A stretch of 64,000 nt of DNA from Isurus oxyrinchus (Eukaryota): the NCBI GenBank assembly GCA_026770705.1, contig JANJGN010000034.1, positions 11,098,001 through 11,162,000 on the forward strand, given 5' to 3'. The stretch's first letter is position 1; the number at the start of each line of letters is the position of its first letter. Below, piece after piece: positions 1 through 23,964 of this stretch. Both the position numbers and the translations under genes were made by a program. The notes under the pieces are model-generated. The model saw nothing but the letters and a program-made list of their open reading frames with translations. It was not told the origin of the DNA and ran no database searches.

Positions 1-90
1 ATTGCTGTAACCCATCTGGTTCACCAGTGTCCTTTAGGGAAGGAAATCTGCCGCCGTTGTCAGGCATGACCTACATGTAGCTCACCGTTA
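1..90 (+). mobile_element. tRNA-derived SINE, central fragment (runs off the window start)
   Basis: aacccatctggttcac...cctttagggaaggaaatctgcc core, also seen in SINE copies at 17.1, 33.0, 39.7 and 57.3 kb. Confidence 0.7.
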
Positions 91-345
91 GCGGCCAATG
101 ATATTAAAAACCCCGCTCGCCCAGTCCGGGTGTGTGTTGCACCAACATATTAACGACCCACTCTTTATCAAATTGCACTGTAGTTAATAGCAATACAGCA
201 TCTGCCTTAGCGCAATTTGTATGAGTGTATTTATTTTTATTGAGTTGGATGTTGGGTCTAGTCAGTCGGGTCGGGCGGTAAGTCATGGGTAAGGGTGCAA
301 GCCGGGGTTCAGTTGAGTGAGGCTGGGTGCCTGCCTGTTCTCCAG

Positions 346-2830
346 CTCTGTGGACCTCTGCACTGGGACTGTGAGAGTTTCTGTGCTGGAACTGTGTAAG
401 TTTCTGTGCTGGGACTGTGTGAGTTTCTGTGCTGGGACTGTGTGAGTTTCTGTGCTGGGACTGTGTGAGTTTCTGTGCTGGGACTGTGTGAGCCTCTGTG
501 CTGGGACTGTGTGAGCCTCTGTGCTGGGACTGTGTGAGTTTCTGCGCTGGGACTGTGTGAGTTTCTGCGCTGGGACTGTGTGAGTTTCTGCGCTGGGACT
601 GTGTGAGTTTCTGCGCTGGGACTGTGTGAGTTTCTGCGCTGGGACTGTGTGAGTTTCTGTTTTGGGACTGTGTGAGTTTCTGTGCTGGGACTGTGTGAGT
701 TTCTGTGCTGGGACTGTGTGAGTTTCTGTGCTGGGACTGTGTGAGTTTCTGTGCTGGGACTGTGGGAGTTTCTGTGCTGGGACTGTGGGAGTTTCTGTGC
801 TGGGACTGTGTGAGTTTCTGTTTTGGGACTGTGTGAGTTTCTGTGCTGGGACTGTGTGAGTTTCTGTGCTGGGACTGTGTGAGTTTCTGTGCTGGGACTG
901 TGTGAGTTTCTGTGCTGGGACTGTGGGAGTTTCTGTGCTGGGACTGTGGGAGTTTCTGTGCTGGGACTGTGTGAGTTTCCGTGCTGGGACTGTGTGTGTT
1001 TCCGTGCTGGGATTGTGTGAGTTTCTGTGCTGGGACTGTGTGAGTTTCCGTGCTGGGACTGTGTGAGTTTCCGTGCTGGGACTGTGTGAGTTTCCGTGCT
1101 GGGACTGTGTGAGTTTCCATGCTGGGACTGCTGTGTGAGTTTCCGTGCTGGGACTGCTGTGTGAGTTTCCGTGCTGGGACTGCTGTGTGAGTTTCTGTGC
1201 TGGGACTGTGTGAGTTTCCGTGCTGGGACTGTGTGAGTTTCCGTGCTGGGACTGTGTGAGTTTCCGTGCTGGGACTGTGTGAGTTTCTGTGCTGGGACTG
1301 TGTGAGTTTCTGTGCTGGGACTGTGTGAGTTTCTGTGCTGGGACTGTGTGAGTTTCCGTGCTGGGACTGTGTGAGTTTCTGTGCTGGGACTGTGTGAGTT
1401 TCTGTGCTGGGACTGTGTGAGTTTCTGTGCTGGGACTGTGTGAGTTTCTGTGCTGGGACTGTGTGAGCCTCTGTGCTGGGACTGTGTGAGCCTCTGTGCT
1501 GGGACTGTGTGAGTTTCTGCGCTGGGACTGTGTGAGTTTCTGCGCTGGGACTGTGTGAGTTTCTGCGCTGGGACTGTGTGAGTTTCTGCGCTGGGACTGT
1601 GTGAGTTTCTGCGCTGGGACTGTGTGAGTTTCTGCGCTGGGACTGTGTGAGTTTCTGTGCTGGGACTGTGTGAGTTTCTGTGCTGGGACTGTGGGAGTTT
1701 CTGTGCTGGGACTGTGGGAGTTTCTGTGCTGGGACTGTGTGAGTTTCCGTGCTGGGACTGTGTGTGTTTCCGTGCTGGGATTGTGTGAGTTTCTGTGCTG
1801 GGACTGTGTGAGTTTCCGTGCTGGGACTGTGTGAGTTTCCGTGCTGGGACTGTGTGAGTTTCCGTGCTGGGACTGTGTGAGTTTCCGTGCTGGGACTGCT
1901 GTGTGAGTTTCCGTGCTGGGACTGCTGTGTGAGTTTCCGTGCTGGGACTGCTGTGGGAGTTTCTGTGCTGGGACTGCTGTGGGAGTTTCTGTGCTGGGAC
2001 TGTGTGAGTTTCCGTGCTGGGACTGTGTGAGCTTCCGTGCGGAGACTCTGTGAGTTTCCGTGCTGGGACTGCTGTGTGAGTTTCCGTGCTGGGACTGTGT
2101 GAGTTTCCGTGCTGGGACTGTGTGAGTTTCTGTGCCGGGACTGTGTGAGCTTCTGTGCCGGGGCTGTGCGCGTTTCTGTGCCGGGGCCGTGCGCGTTTCT
2201 GTGCCGGGGCCGTGCGCGTTTCTGTGCCGGGGCCGTGCGCGTTTCTGTGCCGGGGCCGCACGCGTCTCTGTGCCGGGGCCGTGCGAGTTTCTGAGCTGAG
2301 ATCGTGTTTGTTTCTGTGCTGGAACTGTCTGAGTCTCTGTGCTGTGACTTTGTATGCTGAGGCTCTGAGTTTCTGTCCAGGAATGGCGTGACTCTCTGTT
2401 CTGGGACTTTGTGTTCCTCTGTGGTGCGGCTGTGTGACTTTCTGTGCTGGGACTTTGTGAGTTCCTCTGCTGGGACTGTGTGAGGTTTTTGTGCTCGAAA
2501 CCTGTGCATCTCTGTGCAAGGGTTGTTTGAGTTTCAGCCCTGGGACTCTGTGAGCCTCTGTGCTTGGACTGTGTGAGCTACTGTCCTGGGACTATGTGAG
2601 TTTCTGTGCTGGGTGCCTTTGCATTTCTGCGCCGGTACTATATGTGTTTTTGTACTAGGACAGCACGAATTTATGTCCTGGGGGCCCTCTGCTGGGACTG
2701 TGAGTTTCTGTGTTGGGACTATGTTAGTTTCTGTGTTGGATCGTTGTGTGGCTGTGAGATGGTATGGTGTGCGTCTCTGTGGAGGTACAGCTTGCTTCTC
2801 TGTGTCTGTGCCCTGTACTTTGGGACTGTG
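346..2830 (+). repeat. 23-bp satellite array (ctgtgtgagtttctgtgctggga)n with a homogeneous core
   Basis: Direct tandem units; variant blocks gagcctctg, ctgcgctgg, ttccgtg, and a CpG-rich variant at about 2150-2290. Confidence 0.97.
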
Positions 2831-4042
2831 AAGCTGTATCTGGTCGGTCTTTGTTTGCATGAGGGTCCAAACCTGATCTGACCCTCCAGCTGGTTCACGC
2901 TCTGTTTCTTGCTACATCTGGCCCTGGTTAGGTCATGTGTCTCTTGGATTTGTGCACGTGCTGTGAGAGACAAATTGCCAAAGCTGTGGGATGTTAATCA
3001 TTGGGAAAATGGTGGAGCTGGATGGCGTCTGAGAAGGAGAATGCAGTCTGCTGCTAGAGCCTCCTTGAAAGGGAATTCCACCATCCTCCAATCGTGCAGC
3101 GACCACACGAGACTCAAGCTTCTTTTAACTAATCTGCTGCCAGAGCCTCCTTGTCTCTCTTTGTTCTTGGAACATCATCTGTTTCTCTCATGCCTCTCAA
3201 TTTTAATTCTTGTTACCTCATATTTTCCTTTCCCCAATTCTTTTATCTGTTCATTTTTGTGTCCGCCTTTTGCTGCCTCTCTGCCTCTTTGTCTAAGCCC
3301 CTTTGCCTTTATTACCCTTGAGTCTATCGTTTCCCTTATCTCTATCCCTTCGCGACTGTGTATGACAGTGACCCCAAGTTCAGGTGTTTTATTTCTCCAG
3401 CCTCCAAGCCTCAATTCTTTGCAACATTTTTCAATATTTACACTTGATCAGTCTGTATCCAGATGCAGGCAGCTCCTGATGTAGCTCCTGAAATTCTGAG
3501 GCCCTCCAACCAGCGCTTGTAGTAGCTTCCAACCACCAACAGAGGGTGGGGTTGCATCACTTTGAACACAAGGTAAACAGGTTTCAGGATTTGATCGGAT
3601 TTGACCTTTTTTAATCCATTCATCCAGAGGCAAGGGATCATCCATGCAGAAGCCAGCTAAATTAAAATTGGCACCAGGCAGAACATTCAGTGCTCTGGGC
3701 GGGGATGGGCTCCCATTTGAAAGTAGCCACCTGGACAGACTTTTAAATTTCCCTACAGAGCGATCTGAAAGCTGTTGCCACCATGAAGCTGGGGATCAAG
3801 GTTAAACGGTTCTCTTGCACTACAGAGCACAGGAAAGTAACCTAAGGAAGTTTCTGAATACATTTCTCTGTTTCTCATGGTAAGAACTGACCCATGCTGT
3901 CAATGACATTATGACCTTAGGCTAGTGTCCCATTAAACATGGATTCAAATCCAACCATGGCGGTTCAATATTGTGAAGAACCGTTTTCACAAATCTGGAA
4001 ATAAATAAAAATCACTGATTTCCGTAAAAGTGGCCACGAAGC

Positions 4043-5034
4043 TGATGTAGTGGTTATTTCACACGTGCCTTTAAAAATGTGACTCCAATTCCAAATCAAA
4101 TGCTTAACTACGCTGACTGGTTCCCAAACCGATCCCATCATATCAAACTCAGGGCAGGGAAGACTGAGGCGTTAAGTGTGGAACTTGCATTTTAATCCTC
4201 TGAAGTCAACAATGCATCTGAAAGTTACATTGATCTTTAGAGAGCCACCCCTACCCCATTTCAGCAGTATGTTGGGAGTGGAAAGAGATTTGGGAGTGTA
4301 GGTGAAATCTAACCACAGTGAGATTTTAAAATGTAAGCAAATAATTTCTGATAGATCACCACTTTCAAAACACTTTCTACACTGTGAACTTTCTGTTCTA
4401 AACCATTAAACAAATTGTGTTTAGTTATTGATGAGCTCTATTTGTGTGAATGGGGTGAGTACACCAGCAGCACATTTGCGTTTAATTACAACGTATTCAC
4501 TGGATTCCTGAATCTGGAGGTGATTTGCAGGTTTATGAAAGTTTGAGAAACTAAGTGCCACTTCCAGAGGCTTCCTACTTGGAGCGGGTTTGGATGTAGC
4601 CTCTCGGACATAAAGATTAATGTCCGGGCCATGGCTCTCTAACGGAAAGCTGTGTATTAGACATAGAGCGAGTGGAATGAATGGGATTGTCACATCATAT
4701 ATAGATAGTGGTGATCTATCAGAAATTAATTGCTTACATTTTAAAATCTCACTGTGGTGAGATTTCACCTACAGTCCCAAATCTCTTTCCACTCCCAACA
4801 TACTGCTGAAATTGGGTGGGGATGGCTCTCTGAAGATCAATGTAACTTTCAGACGGATTGTTGACTTCAGAGGATTAAAAGGCAACTTCAGCACTTAACG
4901 TCTCCGTCTTCCCTGTCCTGAGTTTGATATGATGGGATCAGTTTGGGAGCCAGTCAGCGTAGTTAAGCATCACGGTTTTGATTTGGGATTGGAGTCACAT
5001 TTTGAAAGACTCATGTGTAATAACCACTACATCA
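4043..5034. repeat. Inverted repeat: arms 4043-4363 and 4707-5034, 343-bp spacer
   Basis: tgatgtagtggttatt...gatagatcaccact versus agtggtgatctatc...aataaccactacatca; about 90% identity by eye. Confidence 0.93.
4421..4638 (-). pseudogene. Siglec-like terminal cytoplasmic exon with an ITSM-like motif
   Basis: Acceptor tttccgttag; frame reads ...VALSFSNFHKPANHLQIQESSEYVVIKRK (motif 4475-4501), resembling Siglec C-termini of the TEYxxIK type; the next codon TGT may be a lost TGA. Confidence 0.55.
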
Positions 5035-5363
5035 TAATCTCTTTCCTTCTATCTCTGATACCAATCTACTGTTCATACTCAGTTGGAAAAGGTACCTTAA
5101 ATTCTACAGTTTAGTTCCAATAGAAATCTGCTAGACAGGAAAGGTGCATGACAAATTCACTGGGACAATGTCCAGCGCATCACCTCCAGTCAGTGTATTG
5201 GGGCGGCCTGTTCATTATTAAAATGCTCAGTCAAACAAGGTTTCACAACACTCGTTAAATGGTTGAATTGCACTTTCGGAGTTGTTCACATTGGTTACAA
5301 ACAGATTAATAATCAGGTCGATATATCCTTTCGAAATTGGTCAGTTTCCTTCCACTCACTAAC

Positions 5364-5451
5364 CTGGATGGCCCAGGGATGTGGCACCACAGCTTAAGTC
5401 AACACATCGCTGTTGGTCGTGGGGACACAAGCGATGTCACTTTTCATCTTC
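5364..5451 (-). pseudogene. Siglec-like first cytoplasmic exon, ITIM tyrosine position is a stop
   Basis: taataatcag acceptor, gttagt donor, phase 2 to 0, which fits the TM exon; reads (R)KMKSDIACVPTTNSDVLT*AVVPHPWAIQ. Confidence 0.65.
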
Positions 5452-5540
5452 CTGATTATTAAATAAAAGTAAGATTAATCTCCCAGCTGTTTAGAATGAA
5501 GCTTCATAAACCTACTAGTGCCAGTGTGTTCAGTTATAGC

Positions 5541-5642
5541 AACAATAACAGAAAATTCTGGAAAAACTCAGCAGGCCTAACAGCATCTGTGGAGAGAAAG
5601 GCAGGGCTAACGTTTTGAGTCCACATGACTCTTCTTCAGAAC
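5541..5642 (-). mobile_element. Short Penelope-derived element (hammerhead-like core plus 3' tail) with a 16-bp TSD
   Basis: Reverse complement gttctgaagaagagtcatgtggactcaaaacgtta...ctgctgagtttttccag resembles the Penelope tail at 45.6 kb; TSD tgtgttcagttatagc (5525-5540) / tgtgttcaattatagc (5643-5658). Confidence 0.8.
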
Positions 5643-6254
5643 TGTGTTCAATTATAGCTGCCTGATGTACCATCAGGAACTTTGCCCTCTGTCGATTCCT
5701 GATTAACACTGACCCAGTTTGGTTCCTGTTTACTTATTGCTCGTAAACTTGCACCTTACTATGTGAAGGTTTCCCTCTATCTCAGAAAGTTTATCAATGA
5801 CTTGGACCCGCCAGCACTGGCAGAATTTATCAGTCAGCAGAGAGTTTCATCCCCTGTGTAGAGAGCTTGTAACACCTGGCCAAATATCAGGCACAGTCAT
5901 TCGACACATTAAGTTAACATTATTTAAAATATAAATGAATTAATTTTTAAATAAAACGTGTGCACACCTAACACATGTAAGGGAGTGTTACTGTTTGTTA
6001 ACACTAAGTTAGAGAGGTGATTATGAGTTTCATGCAGAGCCTTAATATGTAAAGTAGCAAACAAATGTTTCCTGCGGCCAGTTCACACATTGTTAATAGG
6101 CAGGAGTTCCCGATATTGGTTTAACACGTTGCGTGCAAGGCTGACGGGAGATATTAATGTTATATCAAAAAATGAACTTCTGAAATAGCAGGTAGAACTT
6201 CCTGTTGAAAGAAACGAAAATGACGAGCAAAAGAAAGTAGCGATCAGGGGGCCA

Positions 6255-6472
6255 GTCACAGGGTTAGACCATCATGATTGTACTTCCCTGGCAAACGTTT
6301 CCTCCAATTACAGTCTCCCCTTTCTTCCTCACACTCCCTCCCGCAGGCTCCAGGGGGAGGTAGGAAGGGTTCTGGGAATAAGACTAACATTATGATTTGA
6401 AGTCCTTCGCAGACCCCGTCAGGTTGCCTAAACCAATCCCGGAGACAACCGGGAGCAGGTGTTACCTGTGAC
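6255..6472. mobile_element. Possible degenerate MITE
   Basis: Short terminal inverted match gtcacagg...cctgtgac; no clear TSD. Confidence 0.25.
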
Positions 6473-7599
6473 AACACTGATGTTCACTGTGATCTACCTC
6501 TGCCCCAGCAAGAAACTAATGCCATTTCCTATTGAAGGCAGGACTAGAGTCGATAACCCATCACACCAGAAGGAAGTGTATTCCAGTATTGTACTCAAAC
6601 ATCAATGGCTGACGTTGCACAGATTAAAAGCGATTTGGTGGAAATTGGGCTTAAGCAATCAGTTTAATTCTTCGCGTTCGGTTTGGAAACCTGGACTGTG
6701 TTTTGTTTTCAATTCTAAATGACTTTTGTCATATGTAATTTGCTCACTGTTTCTTCTTTAGGCGCTGGAGGACTGGGGACGACAAACTATTTCAATCCCA
6801 CATGCATGTGAGAATATATTCAGATGTACCTGATGTCCTCTCTGGAGTTGCTACCATGCACGAAGCTGAGGGGAGAACCAAGTCTTTCTTTGCAAATACA
6901 AACTTTCGTGAAGTCACTTTGAATGTAACCTCTTCTGAGTTATCGAGTTCATTCAATTCGCTTGGGCCCAGTTGCATTTTTGCAGATTTTAGCAGCCCGT
7001 TATTTTTGCAAATTCAGAAATTCTGGCAATGTACTTCCAGGAAGCAGATTGAAACTAAATACCTGTAGTAGGAAGGCACCAGAAAAAATAACGCCTTGGC
7101 CCTATCATGTTCTTCCAGAATACATGTATTAATTACCATGCGACTATCCGCCCTCTACAATTAGTCGGATAATTACATTTTTATGAAGCCATCCATACAT
7201 TCTCCCCGATTTACCGCCGTCACTGCTCCTTGCCCTAAAACAATCCCAGAATTTCTGACCCTCCCTATCTTATTTTCAGCTTCCAGTTCTCCTCTTCGCT
7301 TCATCTTCCACTGCTGGTCACAACTTCAGACATTCAGTCCCCACACTCACTGTTATTAACCCCTCTAACCCGCCGCCTCCCCACATCCTTCTTCTCCATG
7401 AAGGCCCTCCATAAACAAACGTCTTTGCCGAAGATCAGCACCGCTCCTATCTCCTACCCTGTCTCCTAGCCCTATCTGCAGCTTTGAATTCATGTCCGAG
7501 TTATGCTTCATTTTACCTCTGTGAAGCTCAGAGAAGAACAAGGCGCTTCAGCAATGCAACTTGTTGCATGATTATTAAACTCGGAGGTAACAATAATGG

Positions 7600-8030
7600 A
7601 GCTGCAATCATATAATGCACTTACTTAAGCATGTCTCCAAATCATTTCTCAGCCAATTAATCAGATTTGAAATTGACCTAAGCTGTTTCTAACAGACGAG
7701 TGGAAGCCATTTAATGCAGGGGAGATCCCATAAACAGCATGGGGGTGACAACTGGTCACTTATTCTGTTGTCGTGGGTTAACTGGGGTAGATATTTGGAA
7801 TGGCAGTGATAGAACTTCACTCCACTTGCACCGAGATTTCCATGTGAGTTTTCCCGCCGGTTTGTGCAGATAGATATTGTTCCACATGACATGCCTCTAA
7901 CCAAAGGCAGTGTCTCTCACAATGTCCCATTGTACTGCAGTGTTCCGGAAGACCCCGTTGACATACTTTATTCTGAATTCTGAACCTACAATTGTGAGAT
8001 ATAGAAGGGAAAGTCTCCAAACCACGTTCT
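7600..8030 (-). mobile_element. Degenerate DeuSINE-like element
   Basis: Weak resemblance to the reverse complement of the Deu central domain as recalled (cccataaacagca..., gtactgcagtg, gaacctacaa). Confidence 0.45.
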
Positions 8031-8306
8031 AAAACACAATCATTCAGTTATCGTTGCTGGCAGAGGCGGTAAATGATCAATAGCCCAGTCCGGGATTGAC
8101 CAGGGGGCGTGAGCCTCTGTCATTCCTGTTTTTTCATTGCACAACGGCCTGGCTTCCATTAGCAGCCCCTTCAAAACTCTTAGCTCATTTTCAGGGTGAG
8201 GAATTTCAGGGCAAACCCTGTAAGCAGTAATTCCGCCGATGCAGAAATCCTGATGCCCCGCACCCTTTCGAATCTGTGTTGAATTATTTACGCAGCACAC
8301 ACATAC

Positions 8307-8391
8307 CTGTGTACCTTCACCGCGATCGGGATCAGAGTGATAACTGCAGCGACTGTTCCAACTGGGCTGACAATTATCCAGGGGAAGATTC
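8307..8391 (-). pseudogene. Transmembrane exon of the Siglec-like gene
   Basis: attattttag acceptor, gtatgt donor, phase 1 to 2; reads (G)IFPWIIVSPVGTVAAVITLIPIAVKVH(R). Confidence 0.75.
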
Positions 8392-8878
8392 CTAAAATAA
8401 TCAAAAATATCTTCTTGTTCATTATTGGCCTCAGTTACAACTTAGTTGCAAGGCAACTTTTCTTTCTGAATGTAAATTCACGTTTCATATATATTGACGT
8501 TGAAGAATTCGAAGTCTGATTAATTCTGCCAAATCCTCAAACTCAGCACGTAATCTCATTAAAAATGCTTGTTGTGGTTCTGTTATTGTGTTGTGGCCTC
8601 TTCACCCCAGAAGGATCAGGCAACATTTGAACCCATTCGTCCTAGTAGGATTTGGAACTTGATTTCAGGCACATGTATGGCCCTGTTTTGTGTCCTGTGT
8701 GAAGCTGCAATACTTACATCAATCTTGGTTTCATTTACGGCAAGCTCATGTGAAAGTAAAACTAATGGAGTGCCCGGATACAATGTCATCTACACCTCTC
8801 AGCCTCGGTAACAGGTTGTGAATCTCTCAGTGCAGAGGAGATGCTTTAGCACAGCAGTAACATCTGACCCTAGCAAAC

Positions 8879-9793
8879 TGTCATGGCCCAATATTTCCTG
8901 AACTTCATTTTTGTTTGCACATTTTAAAACTGATCACAAAAGGCGTCAAAAAGATGAAGTCTGAGGGCCACCGTAATTTTCTGGATTTGACCCTACTTCC
9001 CTTCTCAAGAGGGACAAAAGGAACCTTCCAGAGTGATGCTGAATCAATGTCCTTTCCTTAAGATAATTCAAAACCTTAATCAAATTCTTTGGGTCGCTAA
9101 GATACAAAAACATTGAAATGACAACTTTGGGCTTGTAAACAACATACCACCCGATTTATATACCACCAAAATTGTCCAAGTCACATGATGAGAAAGCCGC
9201 ATTGTTGTCTACTTTTTTTAAAAAAGGAATGCGTTTTCTTGCAGACATGGTTCCAACTGTAGTCTTCAAACTACCTGGAAACCATCCGAGAAGATAAAGA
9301 AGTGGACAACAATACCGTGAAACCTGGGGATGGGCTCCACCTAACTCGTTCCATCTCCGAGGTCACCTGAGATCCAAGAACCTATCTCCTGGAAATATCA
9401 CCACAAGAAGCCTTACAGCTTACAAAAAATCATCTGCTTCACAAGACCTTCACTTCAACACAAGCATCAATTCATCTCAGAAACTATAGGAATTCCACGA
9501 ACGGGACAGGGAAAGTTATGAGCTGCAACCATATTGTTTTATCTTCATCGGTGTCCTTTTTTGTGTTTACAGTAGTGTGTGTAAAACAAGTTAATGGGTC
9601 GTGACGTTCTTAAATATCTGGACTAAGTGCGTGATAATAAATGGCCTCCTTTATTTTAGATCTCACAATAATCTTGATGCTGCAATTATTTATTCCGGGC
9701 AATCTCTTTGAGGGCATGTAAACACACACCCCATAGATAGGAACTTATTGTTCAGGGTCAGTAAAAGGGTACCCATAAATTCTGTCCATGACA
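8879..9793 (+). mobile_element. Probable solo LTR
   Basis: TGTCATGG...CCATGACA inverted termini and AATAAA at 9636-9641; only the 3' part is retained in the right duplication arm (about 19962-20210). Confidence 0.55.
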
Positions 9794-10856
9794 CAGCTCA
9801 TGTGAACCACTCTTAGAAAGTAGTGTTTGCATCACCATGGTAATATCAAAGTTCACATCATGGTGTTAAGTTAGATTACATCCCCAGGTATAACCTCAAT
9901 AACCTCTATATATCCATATTATACTCAAACTTGGTAGCTTCCTATTCAATGTATCATTACAATCTCTACATGCCTTTTCAATTATCCCTAATATCCTTCT
10001 TCAAATTTCAAGAATAACTCGTTTCGTGGTCTTCCCTTGGAATGTATAAATAGGTTGAGGTTGGACTAGTGTCAGGCTGTGAGGCCGAGCAGTTAAGGCT
10101 GAAAGGAGAAAATTCTAAACTCAGAGGGTTGCAAATCTTTGAAGCGCTCTATCCCGGAGAGCTGTGAATGCTTAGCCACTGAGCGTATTCAAGGCTGACA
10201 TATGTTTCAGACCAGAGGGGAATCAAAGAATGTGAGGGACTCGCGACACGGTTGAATTGAGGTCAAAGATCAGTTACGACTGGATTGGATGAGGAGTAGT
10301 CTCCAGATAGACACGCAGGAACAGAATAATTAGGAGCAGGCCATTCGGCCCTCGAACCTGCTCCACCATTCAATAAGATCATGGCTGCTCTGATTGTGGC
10401 CTCAACCCCTTATAGATTACTATAAGTTTGGTAGGGAACTGCATTTAAGCAATTTGGCAAAGGAGGACAGTTGCTCGAGCGATTGTTTTTGGATGCCGAA
10501 GAGGAAGGTCAAAGCGGCTGAATACATGACCCCTAATCGGGGTAAATGTCTCTGATGAGCAAGAGACTAAAAAGTTGAGGGGTGCAGATTTCTCGGAAGT
10601 TAACAGAGACAGGGAAGTAAGAACTCATGAAGGGATTTGAAGTCAAGAAAATTTCTCTGAATCGCGCCATTGCTGGGCCGGGCGTCCTGTGCATTTTAAT
10701 TTGAATGAAACTGTGTTGCATTCGTTTGATGGTTCATCAGGTTTTCAATTTTCCAGAATTTATCAAACCAGTAACGCAGTTGTTTGGCCTGTTTGTTCCC
10801 TTCCTGACATTGACCACGGGTAAATTTCTTATCTTTTTTATTAATTTCTGTTTCAG

Positions 10857-10967
10857 ACGATTTATAGCCCCTGGAAAGTGAACAGGAGAGCGCAAAATAG
10901 ACTTGATTTTGGTGGTTTATTCGAAAACTGGCGAGCAGTGATAATGTGTTCAGCTTGTGATTTACAG
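10857..10967 (+). pseudogene. Probable decayed leader exon of the Siglec-like gene
   Basis: ttctgtttcag acceptor, cag|gtattt donor; ...FENWRAVIMCSACDLQ is signal-peptide-like, but a suitably placed ATG is missing and the phase is off. Confidence 0.35.
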
Positions 10968-12502: not shown

Positions 12503-12753
12503 GTGATTGGTAAAACCAACAGTCAATTCCTCTGTCGTGGAAGGCAACTCCTCATTGTTATACTGCACCGTCAGGGGAACATCGGCCAACAGTTTAAGAT
12601 GAGAGAAAAATGGTGAAGAAATTAACAGCTCTTCCACTGGTGAATTAAAGCAGATGTTTCTCAGCATGACTTCTGAAGATGACGGTTAATATTGGTGTGT
12701 GGCTGAATATAACCTGGGCAGCATAAACAGTTCCACACAGATTTCTGTGCAGC
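12503..12753 (+). pseudogene. C2/I-set Ig exon with premature stops
   Basis: KPTVNSSVVEGNSSLLYCTVRGTSANSLR*EKNG...EDDG*YWCVAEYNLGSINSSTQISVQ, gtaagt donor. Confidence 0.85.
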
Positions 12754-13149
12754 GTAAGTGTGCATAATCTTCTCAATTTGAGACTTGCCTTTCATCTCAC
12801 GAACTATGGGTTAAATTGCAACTTTCTCTTATATGCTTGCTAGAAGGCTGCAACTTGAATGAGGCTGGGACAGAGGTAGTGGCAGGGCCTTTTGTGCAGG
12901 CAGGGCTGGGTATAGCCTCGATGGCTCCAAACATAGAAATAATCCTGGCTTTGGCTCAGGCTGGCAGGAATGAAATATGGCTCACTGTGACATTAATTCA
13001 GCAGATGGTATCTATATGAGTTTGGCCCACAAGAAAACTTAATGCAAACAATATTCTGCATCCAATTCTTCACAAGTAATGCTGGTTTTCTGACGGAATT
13101 ATTTTTTCATTCCAGAGAATTAGCATTTCACATTTTGATGATGAGCATA

Positions 13150-14020
13150 TATTCTCCAAATATATCGGATTAGTGATGGCAACCCTCATAGTGATCTGTC
13201 GTATAGTTATAAATCACTCATGGTGGAGAACGATGAGATTCAGCCAATTGGGTCCATGCCATCTCTCTGTCAAGCAATCCAAACGGACCCATCCATTTGC
13301 TCCTTGCTGGCAACACAGCGAATTTATTTCTTCCAAGAGTCCAGTCAGTTTCATTCTGAAATCATTCATTGTCTTCACTTCGTCCATCTCGTATATATTG
13401 AGTTCCAGGTCGTTTACAAGTGCGTTCTTCCTCATAATTCCGACGCCTCTCCTGACCAAAACCTTAAATCATGTCCGTAAGTCCTTATCCCATCATCAGC
13501 TCATGGGAAAATATTTTCTTTGCTTCCTGTTATAATCTCGTACACAATATGAAATATTCGACAGATTTGACTAATGTAGAAAGACCCTAGTTTCTGTGAA
13601 CTAACATTGCAACGAAAATCCCCAATCGTTGGAACCATTCTGGCAAATCGCATCTGCAGCCCCTCCAGGACCCTCGCATCCGTCATAAAGTGTGGTGACC
13701 AAAGCTGGACACAATCTTCTAACTGTGACCTAACTGGAGCTGTATAGGGTTCCAGCATAACTTCCCTGTATTTACTGTCTCAAGATCTCACAAACTTTAT
13801 CTCCTTTGAGTCCTGCCACTTTCAAGGATCTAGACACAAGCATCCCCAAGTCCCCCTTGCTCCGTACCCACTTTGGAACTGTGCCATTTATTCAATGCAG
13901 CCTCTCGCTTTTTTTTTTCTACCTAAATACATCACCCAACAGTTCCTTGCATTCATTTCAATTTGACGCTTGTCTGCCCACTGTTGTTAGTTATCCATGT
14001 CCAATTGTCTCTTGTTACTG
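13150..14020 (-). mobile_element. CR1 LINE 3' RT fragment
   Basis: Translates to YTAPVRSQLEDCVQLWSPHF, the CR1 C-terminal motif. Confidence 0.75.
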
Positions 14021-14435
14021 GACATCTGAAGAATCGCGGCAGCCCTCAACAAGGGGAAAGGTATTAAAGTGAAGAACTAGGGAATATGTTGAAATAAACT
14101 AACCCTTTCCCCCAAATACTGACAGATGACACACATTATGGGAATATTATAAATTATTAACATTTTTATTAGCTCTGTATGAGGAATCTCCCAGAACGTC
14201 TCTCAAGACAAATATGTTTTTGATGAACATTCATTAGACTAAATATGAAATTGTCCCTAAGGACTAACCCGACCTAAGTAAATATAAAAACATGCCATTA
14301 AAATCGCAATAGGTACAATTGGTACTATTTCCTAGTTTGAAAAAAAGATAAGATGCCAAATCTATTGCATTTACTTCAAAAAACAAATTAATTATTTTTG
14401 GAAACTGCAATAGTTAAATATAATAATTGTTTTAG

Positions 14436-14723
14436 ATCAACCCAGAATAATAGGGGGCCCAGTCTGCATCATCTCTGAAAATTGGACTAACTGCCCCTGC
14501 AGGATAATATAGAATCCACCTGCAAACATTACATGGGGCCTCCATGGGAGCATCCTCCTTGGGATCAGATCAGATGTGGAAATCATCTCCTGGGCGGTGA
14601 ATAAGTCCCTGGTGCAGAGCTCGCTGAGACTGGGCCTACCAACGGGAACTGGAAATCTGATTTCATGTAAAGCAGCAAATAACCACGGAGATTCTATCAG
14701 CAAATGCTAGCTCCACACTGACG
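14436..14723 (+). pseudogene. MAG/Siglec membrane-proximal Ig exon, copy A (2 stops)
   Basis: 288-bp phase 1-1 exon: QPRIIGGPVC...TNCPCRII*NPPANITW...SSLRL...ISCKAANNHG; cysteine spacing as in MAG domain 5. Confidence 0.85.
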
Positions 14724-14910
14724 GTAGATGTTTAACCCTTTTGATTACTATAATGGAGTCAAAGCTCGGTCACTGGCTCAAAGATAATAGTGTCAGCAAA
14801 TGCTAGCTCTGCACTGAGGGTATATGTTTTATCTGCTGAATATTATACTGGAATCACAGCTCAGTCACTAACTCAATTATAATAGTGTCAGCAAATGCCA
14901 GCTCCATTTA
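14695..14910 (+). repeat. About 95-bp tandem repeat (about 2.2 copies) spanning the exon end and splice donor
   Basis: tcagcaaatgc(t/c)agctc recurs at about 14697, 14793 and 14888. Confidence 0.8.
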
Positions 14911-16276
14911 ACAGCTCCATATTGAATCTACCTCCAGTTAATACACGGTGCACTTTCTATTAATGACCAATAGCCAATGAACACAGTCATTAGTACTTTC
15001 TGAAACTCTCTGCATAAATGAAAGGCAAAGTTGGAGGAACAGAAGAAATAAACAATGACATTAAAAATGTTTGTTTTCTGAATAAGATAAACACTTTAAA
15101 AAGTCAGATTCCCTTTCACAATCTGATAGCATTTGCAGTCTACCCCGTCTTGTCTAGATTTATACCTCGTCAGTCCCATCTGGATAGATTATCCTCGCAT
15201 TTATCGACGCGAAATTGAATTATCTGCCTAGATTATAGCTTGGAGTCTATATGACCTCTCCCTACCCCTTCAGCCAAATATGTCACCACACACTTCCCGG
15301 TAATCAATGCCATCTGAAACATGTCTGCCAATGATGGTAACTTATGCCCAGCTGAATAAGATTAGAATCATTGCCGCTGTCCACCACTTTCTCTAGTTTC
15401 TTACCTATCTAGTTCTAAATGTGAGAACAGTTTGAAATTTTATTCTGTATTGGAACATAGAAGTCAGTTATAAATATCAAAAAAATAATTGTGCTCCTAG
15501 GAAGAAGATTGGGGAGCACCAATGTCAACAATCCGGCTATCTTAAAAACAACCATTCACCAAGATTGGATGTTTTCTTTCTTTAAGCTACTTTTTTTTAA
15601 ACCAAGCTGACACACCTCCCTACTCCATGAGCCTTAATTTAGGTAACCAGACTTTTATGTGGTAATTTGTCAAACTCTTTCGTAGACGCCATATAGGCAA
15701 CACCTATTGCTTCCCCCTCATCAACCTCCGAGCTGGGTGTCCTCAATTAACTCAAGCCTCTCCAAGATATGTATCAATGTTGATTTAACAATTTAATATT
15801 TAGAGCCTGCAACGTTTGAATTGTCGCCTTGTTAGCCTAACAGCTGAAGAAATAAGTCAGTCTATCACAAAGGAAGATATTAAAAGGAGCAAAATTAGGG
15901 AAGTTATTTGACTTTTTTCACCAAACACTGGCAGTTAAAGCACATTTTTGGGAACATTAAACGTTTAAATATCAGCTGCTTTTCCTCTTCTCAGAGCAAT
16001 CTCCCAATCCATCTCTCACGAGAAGCCTGGTTGGGATGGTCATTCCTGAGGTTAACTATAATTTTTCTTCTTAGTGGTAATCTGATTTGTTTGAAAACAT
16101 AGCATGCTGTTGAGCTGGTGCTATGTCGATTGTTTTCATTATTTTATCTTTTTTAAATGTGTTTCTTTTGCAGTCTCTGCCACAACTATTGTGGTTCTTT
16201 CAACATACAAATTAGTGCTTTTATTACGAAACTGCAACTGTTAACTATAATTGGTTATTTTTCCCCCTCTTTTTAG

Positions 16277-16557
16277 TTAAACCCAGAGTAATAGTGGGGC
16301 CGATGTGCACTACCTTTGGACTAATTGTACCTCCAGAATTAGAGCTAATCCACCTGCAAACATTACATGGGGCCTCAATGGGGGAATCCTCCCTGGGATC
16401 ATGTCAGATGTGGAAATAATCACCTGGGCGGTGAATATGCCCCAGATGCAGAACTCGCTGAGACTGGTCTTACCAACGGTAACTGGAAACTTGACTTCAT
16501 GTAAAGCTGCAAATAAGCACTGTGATTCTGTCAGCAAATACCATCTCCACGCTCAGG
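16277..16557 (+). pseudogene. MAG/Siglec membrane-proximal Ig exon, copy B (7-bp frameshift deletion)
   Basis: Paralog of 14436-14723, 281 bp; flanking introns are also homologous (about 14400-15130 versus 16230-16840). Confidence 0.85.
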
Positions 16558-17094
16558 GTACATGTTTAACCTGCTCAATACTATAATAGAGTAACGGCTC
16601 AGTCACTAACTGAAGTGTATTAGTATCAACAATGGCCAGCTGCATTTATCTGCTCAATGCTGAATCTATCTTGAATTGCACTTTCCATCCAAGACCAATC
16701 AGCAAATAAACAGTGTGATCAGAATCATCCATTTTGAAATTCAGTCTCCTGAAACTTGCCAATTATCTTGAAAATGACATTTTATTTCCGAATTAAAATA
16801 AACAATTAAGAAACTCCAGTTTTCTTTTCAGAATCTAATACTAAACCGTACTCCACCCTACCACAGGCCCCACTATTAACCCCTCCCCCAGATGCCCATC
16901 TATATCGTCCAGGCCAATAAGCGTTTATAAAGTTCTTTTGATTTAATCCAAGCTCAATTAATGCAGTCAACCTGATCGAGCCATACAGGCAGAGAATGCA
17001 GACTGGAAAATCCAGTAGTCAGATTGCAGCAAACAAACCTATGAATCATGTGGGTTTTGCAGAGTCAACAATTCATTTTGGGGCAGATTAAGGC

Positions 17095-17600
17095 GCAGAT
17101 AGTGATATCACTGGTCCGGTAATCAGGAGACGTAGCCTTATGCACAGGGGACATGGGTTGAAATCCCACCATAGCAACTGGTGGAATTTAAATTGAATTA
17201 ATAAAGCCTGGAATTGAGAACTTGTCTCAGTAATGGTGACCATGGAACTATCATCGATTTTTGTAAAGAACCATCTGACTCACCGATGCCCTTTAGCGAA
17301 AGAAATCTGCCGTCCTTACCTGGTCTGACCTAGACGTGATTAATTCTTAAATGCGTCCATGAGCTGTGGATGCATTAATGGCCCTTGCGCACAAGGCATT
17401 TTTAAGAGCCAGCCACAGGTAAGGATGACAGGTTTCCATTCGAAAAGATTAATAGTGAATCCCATGTTTTTACAACAATACTTTTATGGTCATCATCAGC
17501 CTTGATATTCAGAAATAGCTTACTCAGTTCAAGGGAAATTTAAGATACTCAACAAATGCTGGGCTTCTCAGCAACAGTCATGTTCCATGACAGAATAAAT
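17095..17600 (+). mobile_element. tRNA-derived SINE with a nested antisense SINE fragment (about 17390-17510)
   Basis: Head with gggttgaaatcccacc box B-like motif, SINE core, inverted core fragment, then the 3' tail. Confidence 0.65.
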
Positions 17601-18314
17601 AGAGAAAACAGAACACTGATCCTAACGATGCTTGAATAGAGACGTGGATTAGTATATTTCTACATTAAATACTTAAGGCTCTTTGAGGTGTTTCGGTGGC
17701 AACTAAACTGAGGGAGGGTACTTGTCTGTGACAAGTGAGGAATTTTACGAGGTTAGACATAGAGAGCAAGCAGATTGAAACCTATTGAGATGTTCATCTG
17801 AACTGATAGATGCCGTGACTTAGTCTGGGAAGGTTCAGAATTTGCATCTCAGGAGTAGCGCAGAAAAAGCCGACTGTTGTGGTTGACCTGACTGCTTGTT
17901 GGCGCGGGGTGAAATTGCAGCTGAGTTACTTGTTTGATAAATTCTGGAAAATTGAAAGCTCGATGAACCATCAGACGAATGCAATACAGTTTCATTCACA
18001 ATAAAATGCACGGGACGCCGGCCAAGCAATGGCGCAATTTGGAGGAAAGTTCCTGATTTCAAATCCATTCATGAGCACTCACTTCCCTGACTCTCTTAAC
18101 TTCTGTAGACCCAGAAACTTCCGAGAAATATGCACCTCCCAACCTTTGCTCTCTGGCCGCATCCGGGACATTTATCCCTGATTAGAGGCCATGCCTTCAG
18201 CCGCGTTGACCTTCACCCTCGGCATTCCCAACCTAGAACAATCGCTGGAACAACTCTCCTCCCTTTATCATCCTGCTTAAAACCAGCTCCCTACCAAACT
18301 TTTGATCATCTACA

Positions 18315-19430
18315 ATTTCCCTCAATCTCTAGATTCTGGAAATTTCTCAGCGGATTGGAAAATCTCAATTGTACCACATCTATTCAATAAAAAAAGGGAG
18401 ACAGAATGGAGGAAACCATCGGCCAGTTCGCTTAATATCTGCCATATGGAAAATGCAAAAGTTCATTATGAAGGAAGCAGCATCAGGACATTTAGGAAAT
18501 CATAATGCCGTTAAGGAGAGTCACCATGTTTTCAAGAGAGCAAAAAGAGTCTACAAAGGGAAATAGACAGGCTATGTGAGTGGGGGAAAATGCGAAATTG
18601 CTGATGGAGTATAACGTGGAGAAATGTGAACTTGTCCACTTTGACAGGAAAAGGAAAAAAATGCATGTTATTTTAATGGAGAAAGATAGCAGAACTTTAC
18701 GGTACAGAGGGATCTGGGTGTCCTGATACATGGGGTCACAAAAAGCTAGCATGTAGGTATAGCAAGAGATTGGGAAGGCACATGGAACGCTGGCCTTACT
18801 TGCAAGGGGGAATCGGGCATAAAAGGAGAGAGTTGTTGCTACAGCTGTACAAGGCCGTAGTGAGGCCACATCTGGAGTATTGTGTAGAGTTTTGGTCTCC
18901 TTACCTAATAAAGGATATAATTGCAATTGAGGCAGTTCAGAAAAGGGTTCACTCGTCTGATTCTTTGAGCGAAGAGTTATCTCATGAGGAAAGGTTGAGT
19001 ACTTTGGGCCAATGTCCCCTTTGTAGTTGAAAATAAGGAATACTGATGTCATTGAATCATATAAGATCCTGAGGTAACGTGACAGAGACGAAGCTGAGAA
19101 GATGTTTCCACTTGTTGGTCTTTCTGGACCTGGGTCACAGTTTAAAAGCTAGGGGCTTCAGAGTTTAAGACTGAGATCAGGTTTGTTTTTCTCCCCCAGG
19201 GTCGTAATTCTGTGAGATTCACTTCCCCAAAGAGGAGTCAAGGCGGGGTCTTTGATTATATTCAGGGCTGAGTTAGACATATTTTTGATCGACAAGGGAG
19301 TCGACGATTATGGGAAGAGACATGAAAGAGGGGTTGAGATCACAGTCAGAGCAGCCATGATCTTATTGAATGGTGGAACAGGCTCATGGGCCCGAATGGC
19401 CTTCTTCTTGCTCCTCTTTCTTGTGTTCTT
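18315..19430 (+). mobile_element. CR1 LINE fragment inserted in the right arm
   Basis: LLQLYKAVVRPHLEYCVEFWSPYL motif plus CR1-type 3' tail; absent at the matching left-arm position. Confidence 0.85.
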
Positions 19431-20210
19431 GTGTCTCGGCCTCGAGGCTACTCCTCATCCAATTAAGTCATAGCTGACCTTTGACCTCAATTCCACTGTG
19501 TCACGGGTTCCTCACACCCCTTGATTCCCCTCTGTGCCGAAACATATCTCAACCTTGAATGCACTCAGTGGCTAAGCATTCACAGCTCCCCAGGACAGAG
19601 AGCTACAAAGGATTGTAACCCACTGAGTTTAGACATTTTTCCTTTTAGTCCTAATAGTTCGGCCTCATAGCTTGAGACTATTCCAGCCCGAAATTATTTG
19701 TGGATTCCAGGGGAAGACTACGAAATGGAATATTCTTGAAATTTGAAGCAGAATATTAGGGATAATTGAAAAGGCTTGTTAGAGACTGAAATGATACATT
19801 GAATAAGAATCCACCCATTTTGAGCATATTATGGATATATAGAGATTATCGAGGTTATACCTGAGGATGTAGTCTGGGTCGGATCATTAACCACATGCTG
19901 TGAACTTTGATATCATCATGGTGATGCAAACACTGCTCTCTCTCTATGTTTCACTTTAGTTGTGCCACGGGTAGAACTTATGGGTTCGTTTTTACTGCTT
20001 TTGATCAATAATTTCTCATCTAAGGGGCGCGTGTTTCTTTTCATAGTCTCAAAGAGATTTCCCCAATTTAATAATTGCAGTATTCAGGTTATTGTGAGGT
20101 TTAAAATAAGAAAGGTCATTTGTTATGATGCACTTAGCCCGGGTGTTTAAAAACATGACGAGTCGCTCACCAGTCTCACAAAGACCATCACACACACAAA
20201 ATAGACGCAT

Positions 20211-20597
20211 CACAGAGTGTGGAAGAGGCCCTTCGGCCCTTCGAGTCTGCACCGACACTTGAGAAACACCTGAGCTAATTACCTAAATAATAAAAAAATA
20301 CCTAATCCCATTTACCAGCACTTGGCCCATAGCCTTGAATGTTATGATGTGCCAAGTACACATCCAGGTACTTTTTTTAAAGAGTGTGAGGCAACCCGCC
20401 TCCATCACCCTCCCAGGCAGCGCATTCCAGACCGTCACCACCCTCTGGGTAAAAAAGTTTTTCCTCACATCCCCCCTAAACCTCCTGCCCCTCATCTTGA
20501 ATTTATGTCCCCTCGTGACTGACTCTTCAACTAAGGGGAGCAACTGCTTTCTATCCACCCTGTCCATGCCCCTCATAATCTTGTACATCTCGATCAA
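20211..20597 (-). mobile_element. CR1 LINE 3' end at the deletion junction
   Basis: MIEMYKIMRGMDRVD...RKNFFTQRVVTVWNALP. Confidence 0.85.
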
Positions 20598-21869
20598 TGC
20601 AGCCTAGTACAATGAAAGATCTGCTTGGTGCCAATTTTCACTTAGCTGACTGCTGCAGTTGGTGATACCTTGCCCCTGGATGAATGAGTTAAGAAGTATC
20701 GAAGCTTACCTCCTCCTGAAACCTGTTTATCAGATACTTAATGTAGAAAGTGATGCAACCCCACCCTCTGCTTGGCAGTTGGAAGCTACTACAGGCGTTG
20801 GTTTGAGGGTCTCATTATTTGAGTCGTTAGATCAGGAGCTGCCTGCTTCTGGATACAGTTTGCTAAAGTGCAATTAGTGAAAACTGTTGCAACGAATTGA
20901 AATTTGGAGGCTGCATAAATAAAACACCTTTCAAGTTCACATGAACGTGGGGTCACAGTCATACTCAGTTGCGATGGGATAGCGAGAATGAAACTTATTG
21001 ATTCAAGGATAATAAATACAAAATGGCTCAGAGAAAGAGGCAGAAAGGCAGCAAAAGATGGACAGAAAAACGAGCAGATAAAAAATTAGAAAGAGGAAAA
21101 TAGGAGGTGAGCAAAAAGTAAAATTGGGAAGCATGAAAGAAGCAGATGAGATTCCAAGAACAAAGTGAGACAAGGAGTGAAGGGGAGGTGAAAGGCTTAA
21201 AAACCAAATACAAACGACAAAGAGGTAGCTTTGAAAAATCACAAGTCATAGCCTGGACCAGACAGGAGTTAAAGCCCATTTGTACGTGTCTTGAATCTGA
21301 TTGGATAATACAACCATGTATATGTTTGACTGGTATAATCATGTATACATATTTTGAAATGACTGGATAAACATCGTCACATGTATACGAAGTCAATAGG
21401 GCACAGATAGAAGAGTATCAATGTGTCAGGCACTGATTTGATGTATTCAAAAGTATTGAACTGTATTGTTATCAGAAAATAGTACAAAAATAGAGGAATA
21501 TAATTAATCAGGGAGCTGGGTCGCCATATTATGGAATGGTTGCGGTTCCCTTGCATATGCTTGGAGAAAACCAGTCAAAAGAAACTTGAGTCTTGTGTGG
21601 TCACTACGCAATCGGAGGATGCTTGAACTCCCTTTCAAGGAGGCTCTGGCAGCAGACGTCATTCTCCCTGTCAGACTTCATTTAACTCCTCCATTTTCCC
21701 AATGATTAACATCCCACAGCTTTGGGAATTTGTCCCTCACAGCACGTGCACAAATCCAAGACACACAGCTCAACCAGGGCCAGATATATCAAGGAACAGG
21801 GGGTGGACCAGCTGGAGATTCACGTCAGCTTTAGACCCTCACACATACACAGGGCGACCAGATACTGCT

Positions 21870-23160
21870 TCACAGTCCCAAAGCACCGGGTACAGAAGCA
21901 CAGCATCCCAGAATCGAGTTCCAGCACAAAGATGCGCAACGTCCCATCTCAGAGACACACATAGTACCAGCACAGAAACGCACACAGTCCCAGCACAGGG
22001 ATTCAAAAATCCCAGGGCACAAATACATGCAGTCCCAGCACAGAAATACACAGTCGCAGCAAGAGACACAGACTACCCCAGCACAGAGACACACACAATC
22101 CCAGCACAGAAGCTCACACTGCGCCAGCACAGAGACTCATACAGCCCAAGCACATAAACTCACACTGTCCCAGCACAGGAACTCTCATTGCCCCAGCATA
22201 GACTCATACAGCCCCAGCACAGAAACTCACAGTGTCTCAGCACAGAAATCCGCACAGTCCCAGCATAGAGACTCACACAGTCTCAGCACAGAAACTCACT
22301 CAGCCCCAGCACAGAAACTCATATAGCCCCAGCACAGATATTCACACAGTCCCAGTACAGAAACTCACACAGAGCCAGCACAGAAACTCACAGTCCCAGC
22401 ACAGAAACTTACATAGTCCCAGCAGAGAGACTCACACAGTCCCAGCACAGAAACTCACACAGTCCCAGCAGAGAGGCTCAACGCGTCCCAGCACACAGTC
22501 CAATCACAGAAACTCACAGTCCCATCACTGAAACTCACAGAGCCCCAGCAGAGAAACTCACACAGTCCCAGCACAGAAACTCACACAGTCCCAGCACAGA
22601 AACTCACAGTCCCAGCACAGAAACTCACACAGTCCCAGCACAGAAACGCACACAGTCCCAGCACAGAAACTCACACAATCTCACCACAGAAACTCACACA
22701 GTCCCAGCACAGAAACTCCCACAGTCCCAGCACAGAAACGCACACACTCCCAGCACAGAAACTCACACAGTCCCAGCACAGAAACCCACACAGTCCCAGC
22801 ACAGAAACTCACACAGTCCCAGCACAGAGGCTCACACAGTCCCAGCACAGAAACGCACACAGTCCCAGCACAGAAACTCACACAGCCCCAGCACAGAAGC
22901 TCTCACAGTCCCAGCACAGAAACTTAAGCAGTCTCAGAACAGAAACTCACACAATCCCCGCACAGAAACTCACAGTCCCAGCACAGAAACTCACACAGTC
23001 CCAACACAAATGCTCACGAAGTGCCAGAACAGAGAATCACACAGTCTCAGAACAGAAACTCACATTGTCCCAGGACAGAGATTCACACCGTCCACTGTCC
23101 CAGGACAGAGATTCACACCGTCCACTGTCCCAGGACAGAGATTCACACAGTCCCAGCCCT
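21870..23160 (-). repeat. 23-bp satellite array in inverted orientation
   Basis: (cacagtcccagcacagaaactca)n; ends with three copies of a 30-bp variant at about 23065-23150. Confidence 0.95.
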
Positions 23161-23620
23161 GAACCAAAGATACCCCCTCACCCATGGTTACCGCCCAACC
23201 CGACCGACTAGGGCCAACATCGGACTCGATACAAATAAATATACTAATACAAATTGCGGTATAGGCAGATGCTATATTGATATTCAGTACAGTAAAATTT
23301 GAAAAAGGATGGGTTGTTTATGTTTGCAGGGCATTCACCCGGACTCCATGAGCGGGGTCATCAATATCCTTGGCCGGTAACGGTGAGCTACATGAAGTTC
23401 AGGCACGGTAATGACGGCAGATTTGCTTCCCCAAAGGGTACTAGTGAACCAGATGGGTTACAGCAATGGTTTCATGGCCGCCATTAGATTTCCGTGGTGG
23501 GTGGGCACTGGAGAACCCGGACAATGTGGTTAAACAGAAAACATTCATTATTTAAATTGGTCGGGACTTATGTCATTCTTATGGTTTGGGCGTTTATCCT
23601 CGTGTCCCTCCATAAGAAAA

Positions 23621-23684: not shown

Positions 23685-23964
23685 TGTCGGCGATCGGTGT
23701 GTGGGTCTGTGTTCAATTTATTTCCTTGGGTTCTAAACCCAATTTGCCCTCAATGCCTAACTGAACTAATTATAATGAAAGTCACATCTGCTCATTCTGT
23801 AGGCATGACTGAGTGGACGGAAATAAGGAACTTTATTGTGTTGATCAATGGGTTAAAATCTTCCACAATGGATGAGCAACAGAGTTTGTAGAGAATGTCG
23901 TCATTAAGGGAAATTATATATATATATATATAAATATAATAAAGCATTTAATTATAATATAATT

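Follow-up and report, generated by a model that had tools for sequence, protein, structure and literature searches.

How did the parts of one receptor gene come to lie on opposite strands, and did that arrangement ever act as a switch? The question is raised by a stretch of 64,000 nucleotides (nt) from the shark Isurus oxyrinchus (GenBank assembly GCA_026770705.1, contig JANJGN010000034.1, positions 11,098,001 to 11,162,000 of the forward strand), here called the window, in which two inverted arms enclose a 7.1-kb spacer. Exons for the ectodomain of a Siglec-like receptor lie on the + strand of the spacer, and its transmembrane (TM) and cytoplasmic exons lie on the - strand of the left arm. 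A sequence-only reading had proposed either the fossil of an orientation-dependent tail switch or a gene killed by inversion. The locus is a decayed pseudogene at which present-day switching is implausible, and it is most likely a dead shark Siglec/MAG-like gene that was split into opposite-strand parts by an ancient inverted segmental duplication, and not a switch. The observations that carry this answer are the exon map and the lesions in it, how far the arms reach and how much they have diverged, the lack of tail exons in the right arm, and the finding of the same left junction in a sister species.

Exons on the two strands

Exons were mapped by tblastn of shark proteins on the window combined with splice sites, each exon being searched singly and without a joined model. 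The spacer carries a V-set exon of the Siglec type at 11457-11822 (+), with an open frame, within an open reading frame (ORF) at 11417-11866 (+). An exhaustive representative search with this exon returned 107 matches, the best being P0001, a MAG-like protein of 422 aa from Heterodontus (53% identity, E 1e-27; by tblastn, 54% and E 3e-32). The best matches are named 'myelin-associated glycoprotein-like' or 'sialic acid-binding Ig-like lectin' by their sources, and come from Heterodontus francisci, Scyliorhinus torazame, Mustelus asterias, Heptranchias perlo and Chiloscyllium plagiosum. A word-index protein search, the length window of which leaves out full-length Siglecs, gave no match. Among PDB entries, sialoadhesin is the closest (E 2.4e-6), followed by Siglec-8, -5, -10 and -7, and the match to the Pfam V-set family (E 2.6e-4) is under the gathering score.

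Two lesions are evident in the V exon, a conserved Trp and the Tyr of the GTYQF motif both being replaced by Cys. At the position of the sialic-acid-binding Arg in strand F there is an Ile (GTCQFIAKI, compared with GTYNFRFEI in sialoadhesin). P0001, the closest intact homologue, likewise has Ile (GTYQFIVEI), and P0018, another shark protein, has Arg at this position. Lectin function is doubtful, even for the ancestor, and the family is assigned by homology.

Three C2-set exons lie on the same strand. C2 exon 1 (12503-12753; tblastn identity 66% to P0001 and 63% to P0012) is 251 nt long, not a multiple of 3, and has in-frame stops at 12600-12602 and 12687-12689. C2 exon 2a (C2a, 14436-14723; P0012, 65-70%, E 4e-36) is 288 nt long and is interrupted by stops at 14510-14512 and 14708-14710. 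C2 exon 2b (C2b, 16277-16557) is a tandem duplicate of C2a with 75% DNA identity; its length of 281 nt, not a multiple of 3, reflects a 7-nt loss that shifts the frame, and Ser replaces the first Ig cysteine. All three are phase-1 exons with 57-70% identity to shark Siglec C2 domains, and all are broken. The sequence-only reading had placed a leader, V, C2 and two membrane-proximal exons here on the + strand, and the V exon, the C2 exon and the duplicated C2a/C2b pair are indeed present. The leader did not survive scrutiny: the sole candidate, an unconfirmed ATG ORF at 10729-10819 (+; MVHQ...LFVPFLTLTT) with a phase-1 donor, straddles the end of the left arm, and no leader exon could be confirmed, the best score of the candidate against reference leaders being 27 where shuffled sequence gave 27-37.

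The TM and cytoplasmic exons are found on the - strand of a 5.86-kb segment specific to the left arm (3701-9555). The TM exon (8307-8391, -; GIFPWIIVSPVGTVAAVITLIPIAVKVH) has an open frame, a phase-1 acceptor (TTTTAG) and the donor CAG|GTATGT, and matches P0087, P0012 and P0018 at 70%, 66% and 58% identity by tblastn; the phase is thus 1 at both the C2b donor and the TM acceptor. The membrane-proximal cytoplasmic exon, cyt1 (5364-5451, -; 3' boundary uncertain), matches P0087 at 60% (E 1e-5) and P0018 at 48% (E 1e-3). It specifies an immunoreceptor tyrosine-based inhibitory motif (ITIM), the tyrosine codon of which (5394-5396) has become a stop, giving VLT*AVV for the reference SVTYAVV. The last cytoplasmic exon, cyt2 (4475-4651, -; acceptor ACACAG), matches P0087 (E 2e-10) and P0018 (E 4e-9) at 40-42% identity. 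Here a second ITIM has been lost (PLEVAL for the reference VLYAAV, Tyr to Glu), the distal motif SEYVVIKRK is retained, and the reference stop is read through, so that the ORF extends to 4424. Along the C-terminus of P0087 the three exons abut in sequence (70%, 60% and 42% identity).

These tblastn matches bear out the earlier assignment to the left arm of a TM exon, an ITIM-type exon and an exon with an immunoreceptor tyrosine-based switch motif (ITSM), as the TM exon, cyt1 with its ITIM, and cyt2 with the second ITIM and the distal tyrosine motif. By homology, the ancestor would have had an inhibitory tail of the CD33-related type and the present sequence does not, SEYVVI alone surviving of the tyrosine motifs. 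Because two of the three tail tyrosines are mutated, simple pattern matching for ITIM and ITSM motifs in the left arm is misleading, and the tail exons were recognised only by homology. Pfam searches gave no match for the TM, tail and retroelement pieces.

A local inverted repeat (4043-4366 and 4704-5034; 331 nt, 90% identity) surrounds cyt2, which lies inside its 338-nt loop. This repeat arose later than the large arms and has no further copy in the window; it may consist of two inverted insertions of one element, or be a small local inverted duplication.

Whether the exons of the two strands belong together was decided by intact relatives. P0018 and the horn-shark protein P0087 each match the V exon on the + strand and the TM, cyt1 and cyt2 exons on the - strand, and P0012 matches V, C2 and TM exons. 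Since a single intact protein, P0087, matches V and all three tail exons, ectodomain and tail are assigned by sequence similarity to one Siglec/MAG-like family. The tblastn check that the sequence-only reading had proposed, on whether both sets of exons hit the same intact paralog, thus came out in favour of one gene family and not two. P0012 itself (XP_072326203.1, Scyliorhinus torazame, named hemicentin-1-like) has a fusion-like structure, with two or three adjacent Siglec-like units and a retroelement-like stretch in the middle of the model. Its C-terminal end (...VQRYV) comes from reading past the donor of the TM exon into the following intron, with ...VHRYV at the corresponding donor in the window, and the gene model is probably a misprediction. 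A search of the open literature on shark Siglecs found no dedicated paper.

Inverted arms and the missing tail

Outside a 23-bp minisatellite, self-BLAST and an arm-versus-arm search show inverted, colinear homology between the arms with 77-81% identity and E-values of 1e-80 to 0, so the match is not due to chance. Self-BLAST was used for the arms in place of a general repeat finder, which was swamped by minisatellite pairs. The homology falls into blocks labelled a, b and c from the spacer outwards in the left arm, and a', b' and c' in the right. The inner block a (9556-10782, -), the former C2b-to-TM intron, contains a retroelement tail at about 10270-10410 and pairs with the right arm in two parts, 9556-10410 with 20204-19329 (78% identity) and 10410-10782 with 18315-17918 (77%). 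Its counterpart a' (17918-20204, +) runs on from the post-C2b intron and includes an extra 1 kb of retroelement body at 18315-19329. The inner limits given by the sequence-only reading (9548-10782 and 17918-20210) were right to within 10 bp.

Block b of the left arm (2781-3700, -) matches 21900-21560 and 21177-20602. The pair 3147-3700 and 21177-20602 has 78% identity, and the outer part, approximately 2781-3143 against 21900-21560, pairs as well; b' (20602-21900, +) has an insert at 21177-21560. The outer block c (1-340, -) is an inverted match to 23467-23120, that is, to c' (23120-23467, +) by self-BLAST, and blocks and arrays together pair over 1-1621 and 23467-21917 (81% identity). The minisatellite, delimited with Tandem Repeats Finder (TRF), occupies 363-2780 in the left arm (unit CTGGGACTGTGTGAGTTTCTGTG, about 100 copies) and 21917-23093, in inverted orientation, in the right arm, and so accounts for about 2.4 kb of the arm match on the left and 1.2 kb on the right. 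The unit contains GTGAGT, a splice-donor-like hexamer. It also contains CACAGTC, which resembles the heptamer of RAG-type recombination signals; such signals were considered as a cause of inversion and rejected, no nonamer being seen by eye at 12- or 23-bp spacing (no scan was run).

The earlier description of 1-10782 and 17918-23467 as inverted copies therefore holds for a series of colinear inverted blocks, but not for the arms as a whole, which are incomplete copies of each other. In the left arm, 5.86 kb (3700-9556, 54% of the arm) has no partner, and a search of 3701-9555 against the right arm at word size 7 gave no inverted match; the insertions at 18315-19329 and 21177-21560 occur only in the right arm. 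Because the homology extends to position 1 of the window, part of the repeat probably lies to the left of it.

If there had been no duplication, shared repeats would have had to insert independently in a mirrored order by chance. Two components are indeed repeats, namely the minisatellite (also present at 60416-64000) and the retroelement tail (10270-10410 and 19329-19470). This origin is nevertheless barely credible, as four to five blocks share order and orientation over 5.5 kb, and blocks c, b and most of a are otherwise single in the window and of ordinary contig depth. By self-BLAST, blocks a, b and c have no further copy in the 64 kb, and summed contig depth is ordinary outside 10200-10599 (bins 9600-10199 and 10600-10799). 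The arms are an inverted segmental duplication, composed of several colinear inverted blocks that are not themselves dispersed repeats.

The retroelement tail in block a (10200-10599) is a different matter: it belongs to an element that is among the most abundant repeats of both the source and the sister-species genomes, since its summed contig depth reaches 1e5-1e6 in each. At the homologous site in the right arm the copy is longer (18315-19470), and the left-arm copy has probably lost its body through deletion.

No TM or tail exon, and no alternative anchor, was found in 16560-23467 with whole references, with the last 110 residues of 112 shark references, or by DNA comparison, in agreement with the earlier statement that the right arm lacks these exons. 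The missing 5.9-kb stretch is replaced there by a retroelement-like fragment of 398 bp (20204-20602, -), a dispersed repeat that occupies the site of the 5.86 kb and has no match in the left arm. We take it to be a fragment of a long interspersed nuclear element (LINE) on account of conserved ORF2-end motifs, Pfam giving no match; its ORF (20286-20603, -) has relatives at 36128, 56453, 19048 and 26331.

The order of the remaining parts is informative. Reading rightwards on the + strand, C2b is followed by a', the gap, b', the minisatellite and c', which is colinear with a normal gene, and the left arm gives the mirror order a, TM, cyt1, cyt2, b, minisatellite, c. Since the present order is already colinear, the tail-less right arm is explained by a single 5.9-kb deletion, without any inversion. 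Position 17918 is not a rearrangement junction but simply marks where the part of the post-C2b intron with a counterpart in the other arm begins. Only at 10782 has a new junction arisen, the middle of an intron and the 5' side of the gene abutting there head-on.

Origin of the split

In the history we favour, a + strand gene would have consisted of (leader), V, C2, C2a, C2b, block a, TM, cyt1, cyt2, block b, minisatellite and block c. The segment from inside the C2b-to-TM intron downstream would then have been copied, inverted, beside the 5' end of the gene; it probably extended past the window into neighbouring genes similar to GPR139. The left arm would be the resulting copy of the 3' half, lacking both promoter and ectodomain. 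The original 3' half, now the right arm, would later have lost 5.9 kb with the TM and tail exons, perhaps in connection with insertion of the LINE-like fragment that marks the site, and all parts would have drifted neutrally. The inner breakpoint would have fallen within the C2b-to-TM intron of a Siglec gene by chance.

Sequence runs matching the stretch include four from the source species and many from a sister species (organism B), and contigs of one source run and three organism B runs (three samples, three studies) were compared over 9400-15399. One 838-bp contig, present in all three organism B samples, spans 10377-11215 with 22 differences. It joins a block a of the left type (97% alike, compared with 77% for the right-arm copy) to the leader side of the spacer, just as in the window. 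The few contig joints listed fall within the high-copy element at 10200-10599, where contigs break, and no joint of the opposite orientation was seen among the contigs over 9400-15399, a result that applies to the left junction only and to contigs, which hide rare variants. An assembly artefact, with the spacer misoriented between two repeats, has some initial appeal, as inverted repeats with minisatellites are prone to assembly errors. It is very improbable at this locus, where the arms are too different (77-81% alike) to confuse an assembler, and where independent organism B contigs from three samples cross 10782 in the assembled configuration.

The same contigs show how the exons have fared since the two species parted. 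Organism B differs from the source by about 2.6-3.3% in the flanks, and the V exon, with 9 differences in 289 positions compared with 22 in 838 across the junction, is close to this; it also has its own 1-bp deletion at 11573. Because of this private frameshift and a divergence like that of the flanks, the V exon is not under constraint.

Inversion of the spacer was the central idea of the sequence-only reading, which noted that it would give the order leader, V, C2, C2, TM and tail. The exon map agrees, the restored order being leader side, V, C2, C2, C2, TM and tail, as do the phases of the C2b donor and TM acceptor. A gene killed by inversion would have lain on the - strand with the left-arm tail, and recombination between a and a' would have flipped the 7.1-kb spacer and parted ectodomain from tail; the starting state would have been a gene with a partial inverted copy of its 3' half upstream. 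Factor VIII intron-22 inversions in man occur by this mechanism, and young inverted duplications of such a size are known to toggle the spacers between them. The geometry fits, in that one arm starts in the C2b-to-TM intron and the other is inverted past the 5' end, phase 1 is found at both exon borders, and the one arm with surviving tail exons is that from which the ectodomain exons point away. Yet we consider both this event and its starting state unlikely. An extra event is needed (duplication, neutral deletion of the tail from the spare arm, and then inversion), when the present order is already colinear; the exons of the left arm are as decayed as those of the spacer; and the junction is common to the sister species, so any inversion took place before the species split.

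The proposed fossil of a maintained switch, in which the cassette would join either an arm with a tail or one with no tail or a different tail (inhibitory and tail-less receptor forms), fares much worse. It draws on the geometry alone and on the existence of paired Siglecs that have the same ectodomains and different tails. The right arm, however, has no other TM or tail exon to offer, disabling lesions affect every C2 exon and both cytoplasmic ones, the order is colinear, and a single orientation, with the same junction, is seen in three organism B samples. The arms have not been homogenised either: their Jukes-Cantor distance is 0.22-0.27 (about 0.26 substitutions per site), compared with about 0.03 between source species and organism B, and at 77-81% identity they have not been kept near-identical, as recombination-competent inverted repeats would be. 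In blocks a and b they share no exact stretch longer than 32-35 bp, and in the minisatellite none longer than 57 bp. Exact identity of 32-35 bp is far below what homologous recombination between repeats usually needs. Known paired Siglecs are separate genes and not one cassette, and site-specific inversion is not known to operate on such germline receptor genes in vertebrates. We therefore give this proposal next to no credence.

A milder form supposes that, while the arms were young, the 7.1-kb cassette was toggled by homologous recombination, and that of the coexisting orientation alleles one encoded an inhibitory Siglec bound to the membrane and the other a form with no tail, secreted or serving as a decoy. 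This is a long shot; were it true, the cassette would have been a balanced paired receptor made from one invertible gene, and the present locus its fixed and decayed remnant. For the present, the earlier view that switching is unlikely today, given dead exons and diverged arms, is fully sustained: every C2 exon and both cytoplasmic exons have stops, frameshifts or lost tyrosines.

Several points weigh against an ancient inverted duplication followed by deletion as the complete account. A spacer inversion between young arms would leave an identical picture, and we infer both the sequence of steps and the identity of the original arm. The Logan contigs of the source run leave 10600-11000 uncovered (which also favours an artefact), contigs break at 10349-10406 in the high-copy repeat so that no single record crosses 9400-11215, and only the left junction (10782) has contig support. 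The left flank beyond position 1 lies outside the view, and the comparison of the junction covered two closely related species. Finally, none of the runs matching the stretch is recorded as RNA, which does not in itself exclude transcription.

Neighbouring features and known systems

To the right of the right arm is an intact ORF for a G protein-coupled receptor (GPCR) of 316 aa (28318-29268, +), with a match to Pfam 7tm_1 (E 4e-19) and GPR139 as the best PDB match (7vug, E 2.5e-10). Decayed, partial GPCR copies occur near 31.8 and 39.2 kb (31794-32671 and 39231-39601). The GPR139-like ORF beside the right arm and the homology still present at position 1 together suggest an inverted duplication that extends outside the window. 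Further along, two open exons on the - strand (52365-52805 and 54107-54505) form a pair, one being V-set (Pfam E 2.6e-8; best PDB match CD48, E 1.4e-4) and the other I-set/C2 (Pfam E 8e-15). By sequence, the pair looks like a two-domain receptor of the CD2/SLAM family, apparently intact. A third array of the 23-bp minisatellite, more degenerate and in the left-arm orientation, runs from 60416 to 64000 and off the end of the window, and may be the 3' flank of another Siglec gene, on the - strand and beyond that end. A dispersed element of about 95 bp occurs at 23964-24058, 5544-5638, 42366-42471 and 45613-45711 (78-85% alike). The first of these copies is about 500 bp past the visible end of the right arm, and other copies are the ends of an inverted pair (42364-43155 and 45715-44960) that flanks an ORF of 589 aa.

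As a further pseudogene of a shark Siglec cluster with rapid turnover, the locus carries little weight alone. Its wider meaning is that Siglec clusters are shaped in part by inverted segmental duplications whose breakpoints fall inside genes, and it provides an example of neutral decay in which the disabling lesions differ between two sister species. The site, probably a larger palindrome that includes GPR139-like genes, is one where comparison of shark genomes could reveal recurrent inversion. Had the switch held, it would have been a new vertebrate route to paired receptors, and the evidence speaks against it.

The likeness to known invertible systems is one of layout. In the Hin/Gin invertases, shufflons and fimS of bacteria and phages, a segment also lies between inverted repeats and its orientation sets which coding end is joined, but those systems have short exact sites, a dedicated recombinase and two functional states, none of which is found at the shark locus. 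The factor VIII intron-22 type is closer, in that one repeat is intronic and the other is inverted and extragenic, so that recombination would part 5' from 3' exons. In that case, however, the repeats are near-identical and inversion has been observed, whereas the shark arms are old and diverged, and a simple deletion accounts for them in fewer steps.

Among receptors, clusters of CD33-related Siglecs undergo birth-and-death evolution, with pseudogenes and exon loss. The shark relic resembles them as part of a rapid-turnover group of Ig receptors in which genes are duplicated, deleted or turned into pseudogenes and the essential Arg is lost, and differs in belonging to a cartilaginous fish and in having its halves on opposite strands. 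The nearest parallel in arrangement is human SIGLEC11 and SIGLEC16, which lie head-to-head, 9 kb apart, and have a gene-converted ectodomain region (PMC5701461). There, too, genes of the Siglec family are inverted a few kb from each other as the outcome of an inverted duplication, one of the two is frequently represented by a pseudogene allele, and ectodomains are shared while tails differ (PMC5701461). The duplicated part in the human pair is the 5' ectodomain region (about 3 kb, near-identical) and both genes are complete, whereas in the shark it is the 3' half and downstream flank that are duplicated, the ectodomain exons have no second copy, identity between the arms is only 77-81%, and nothing is intact.

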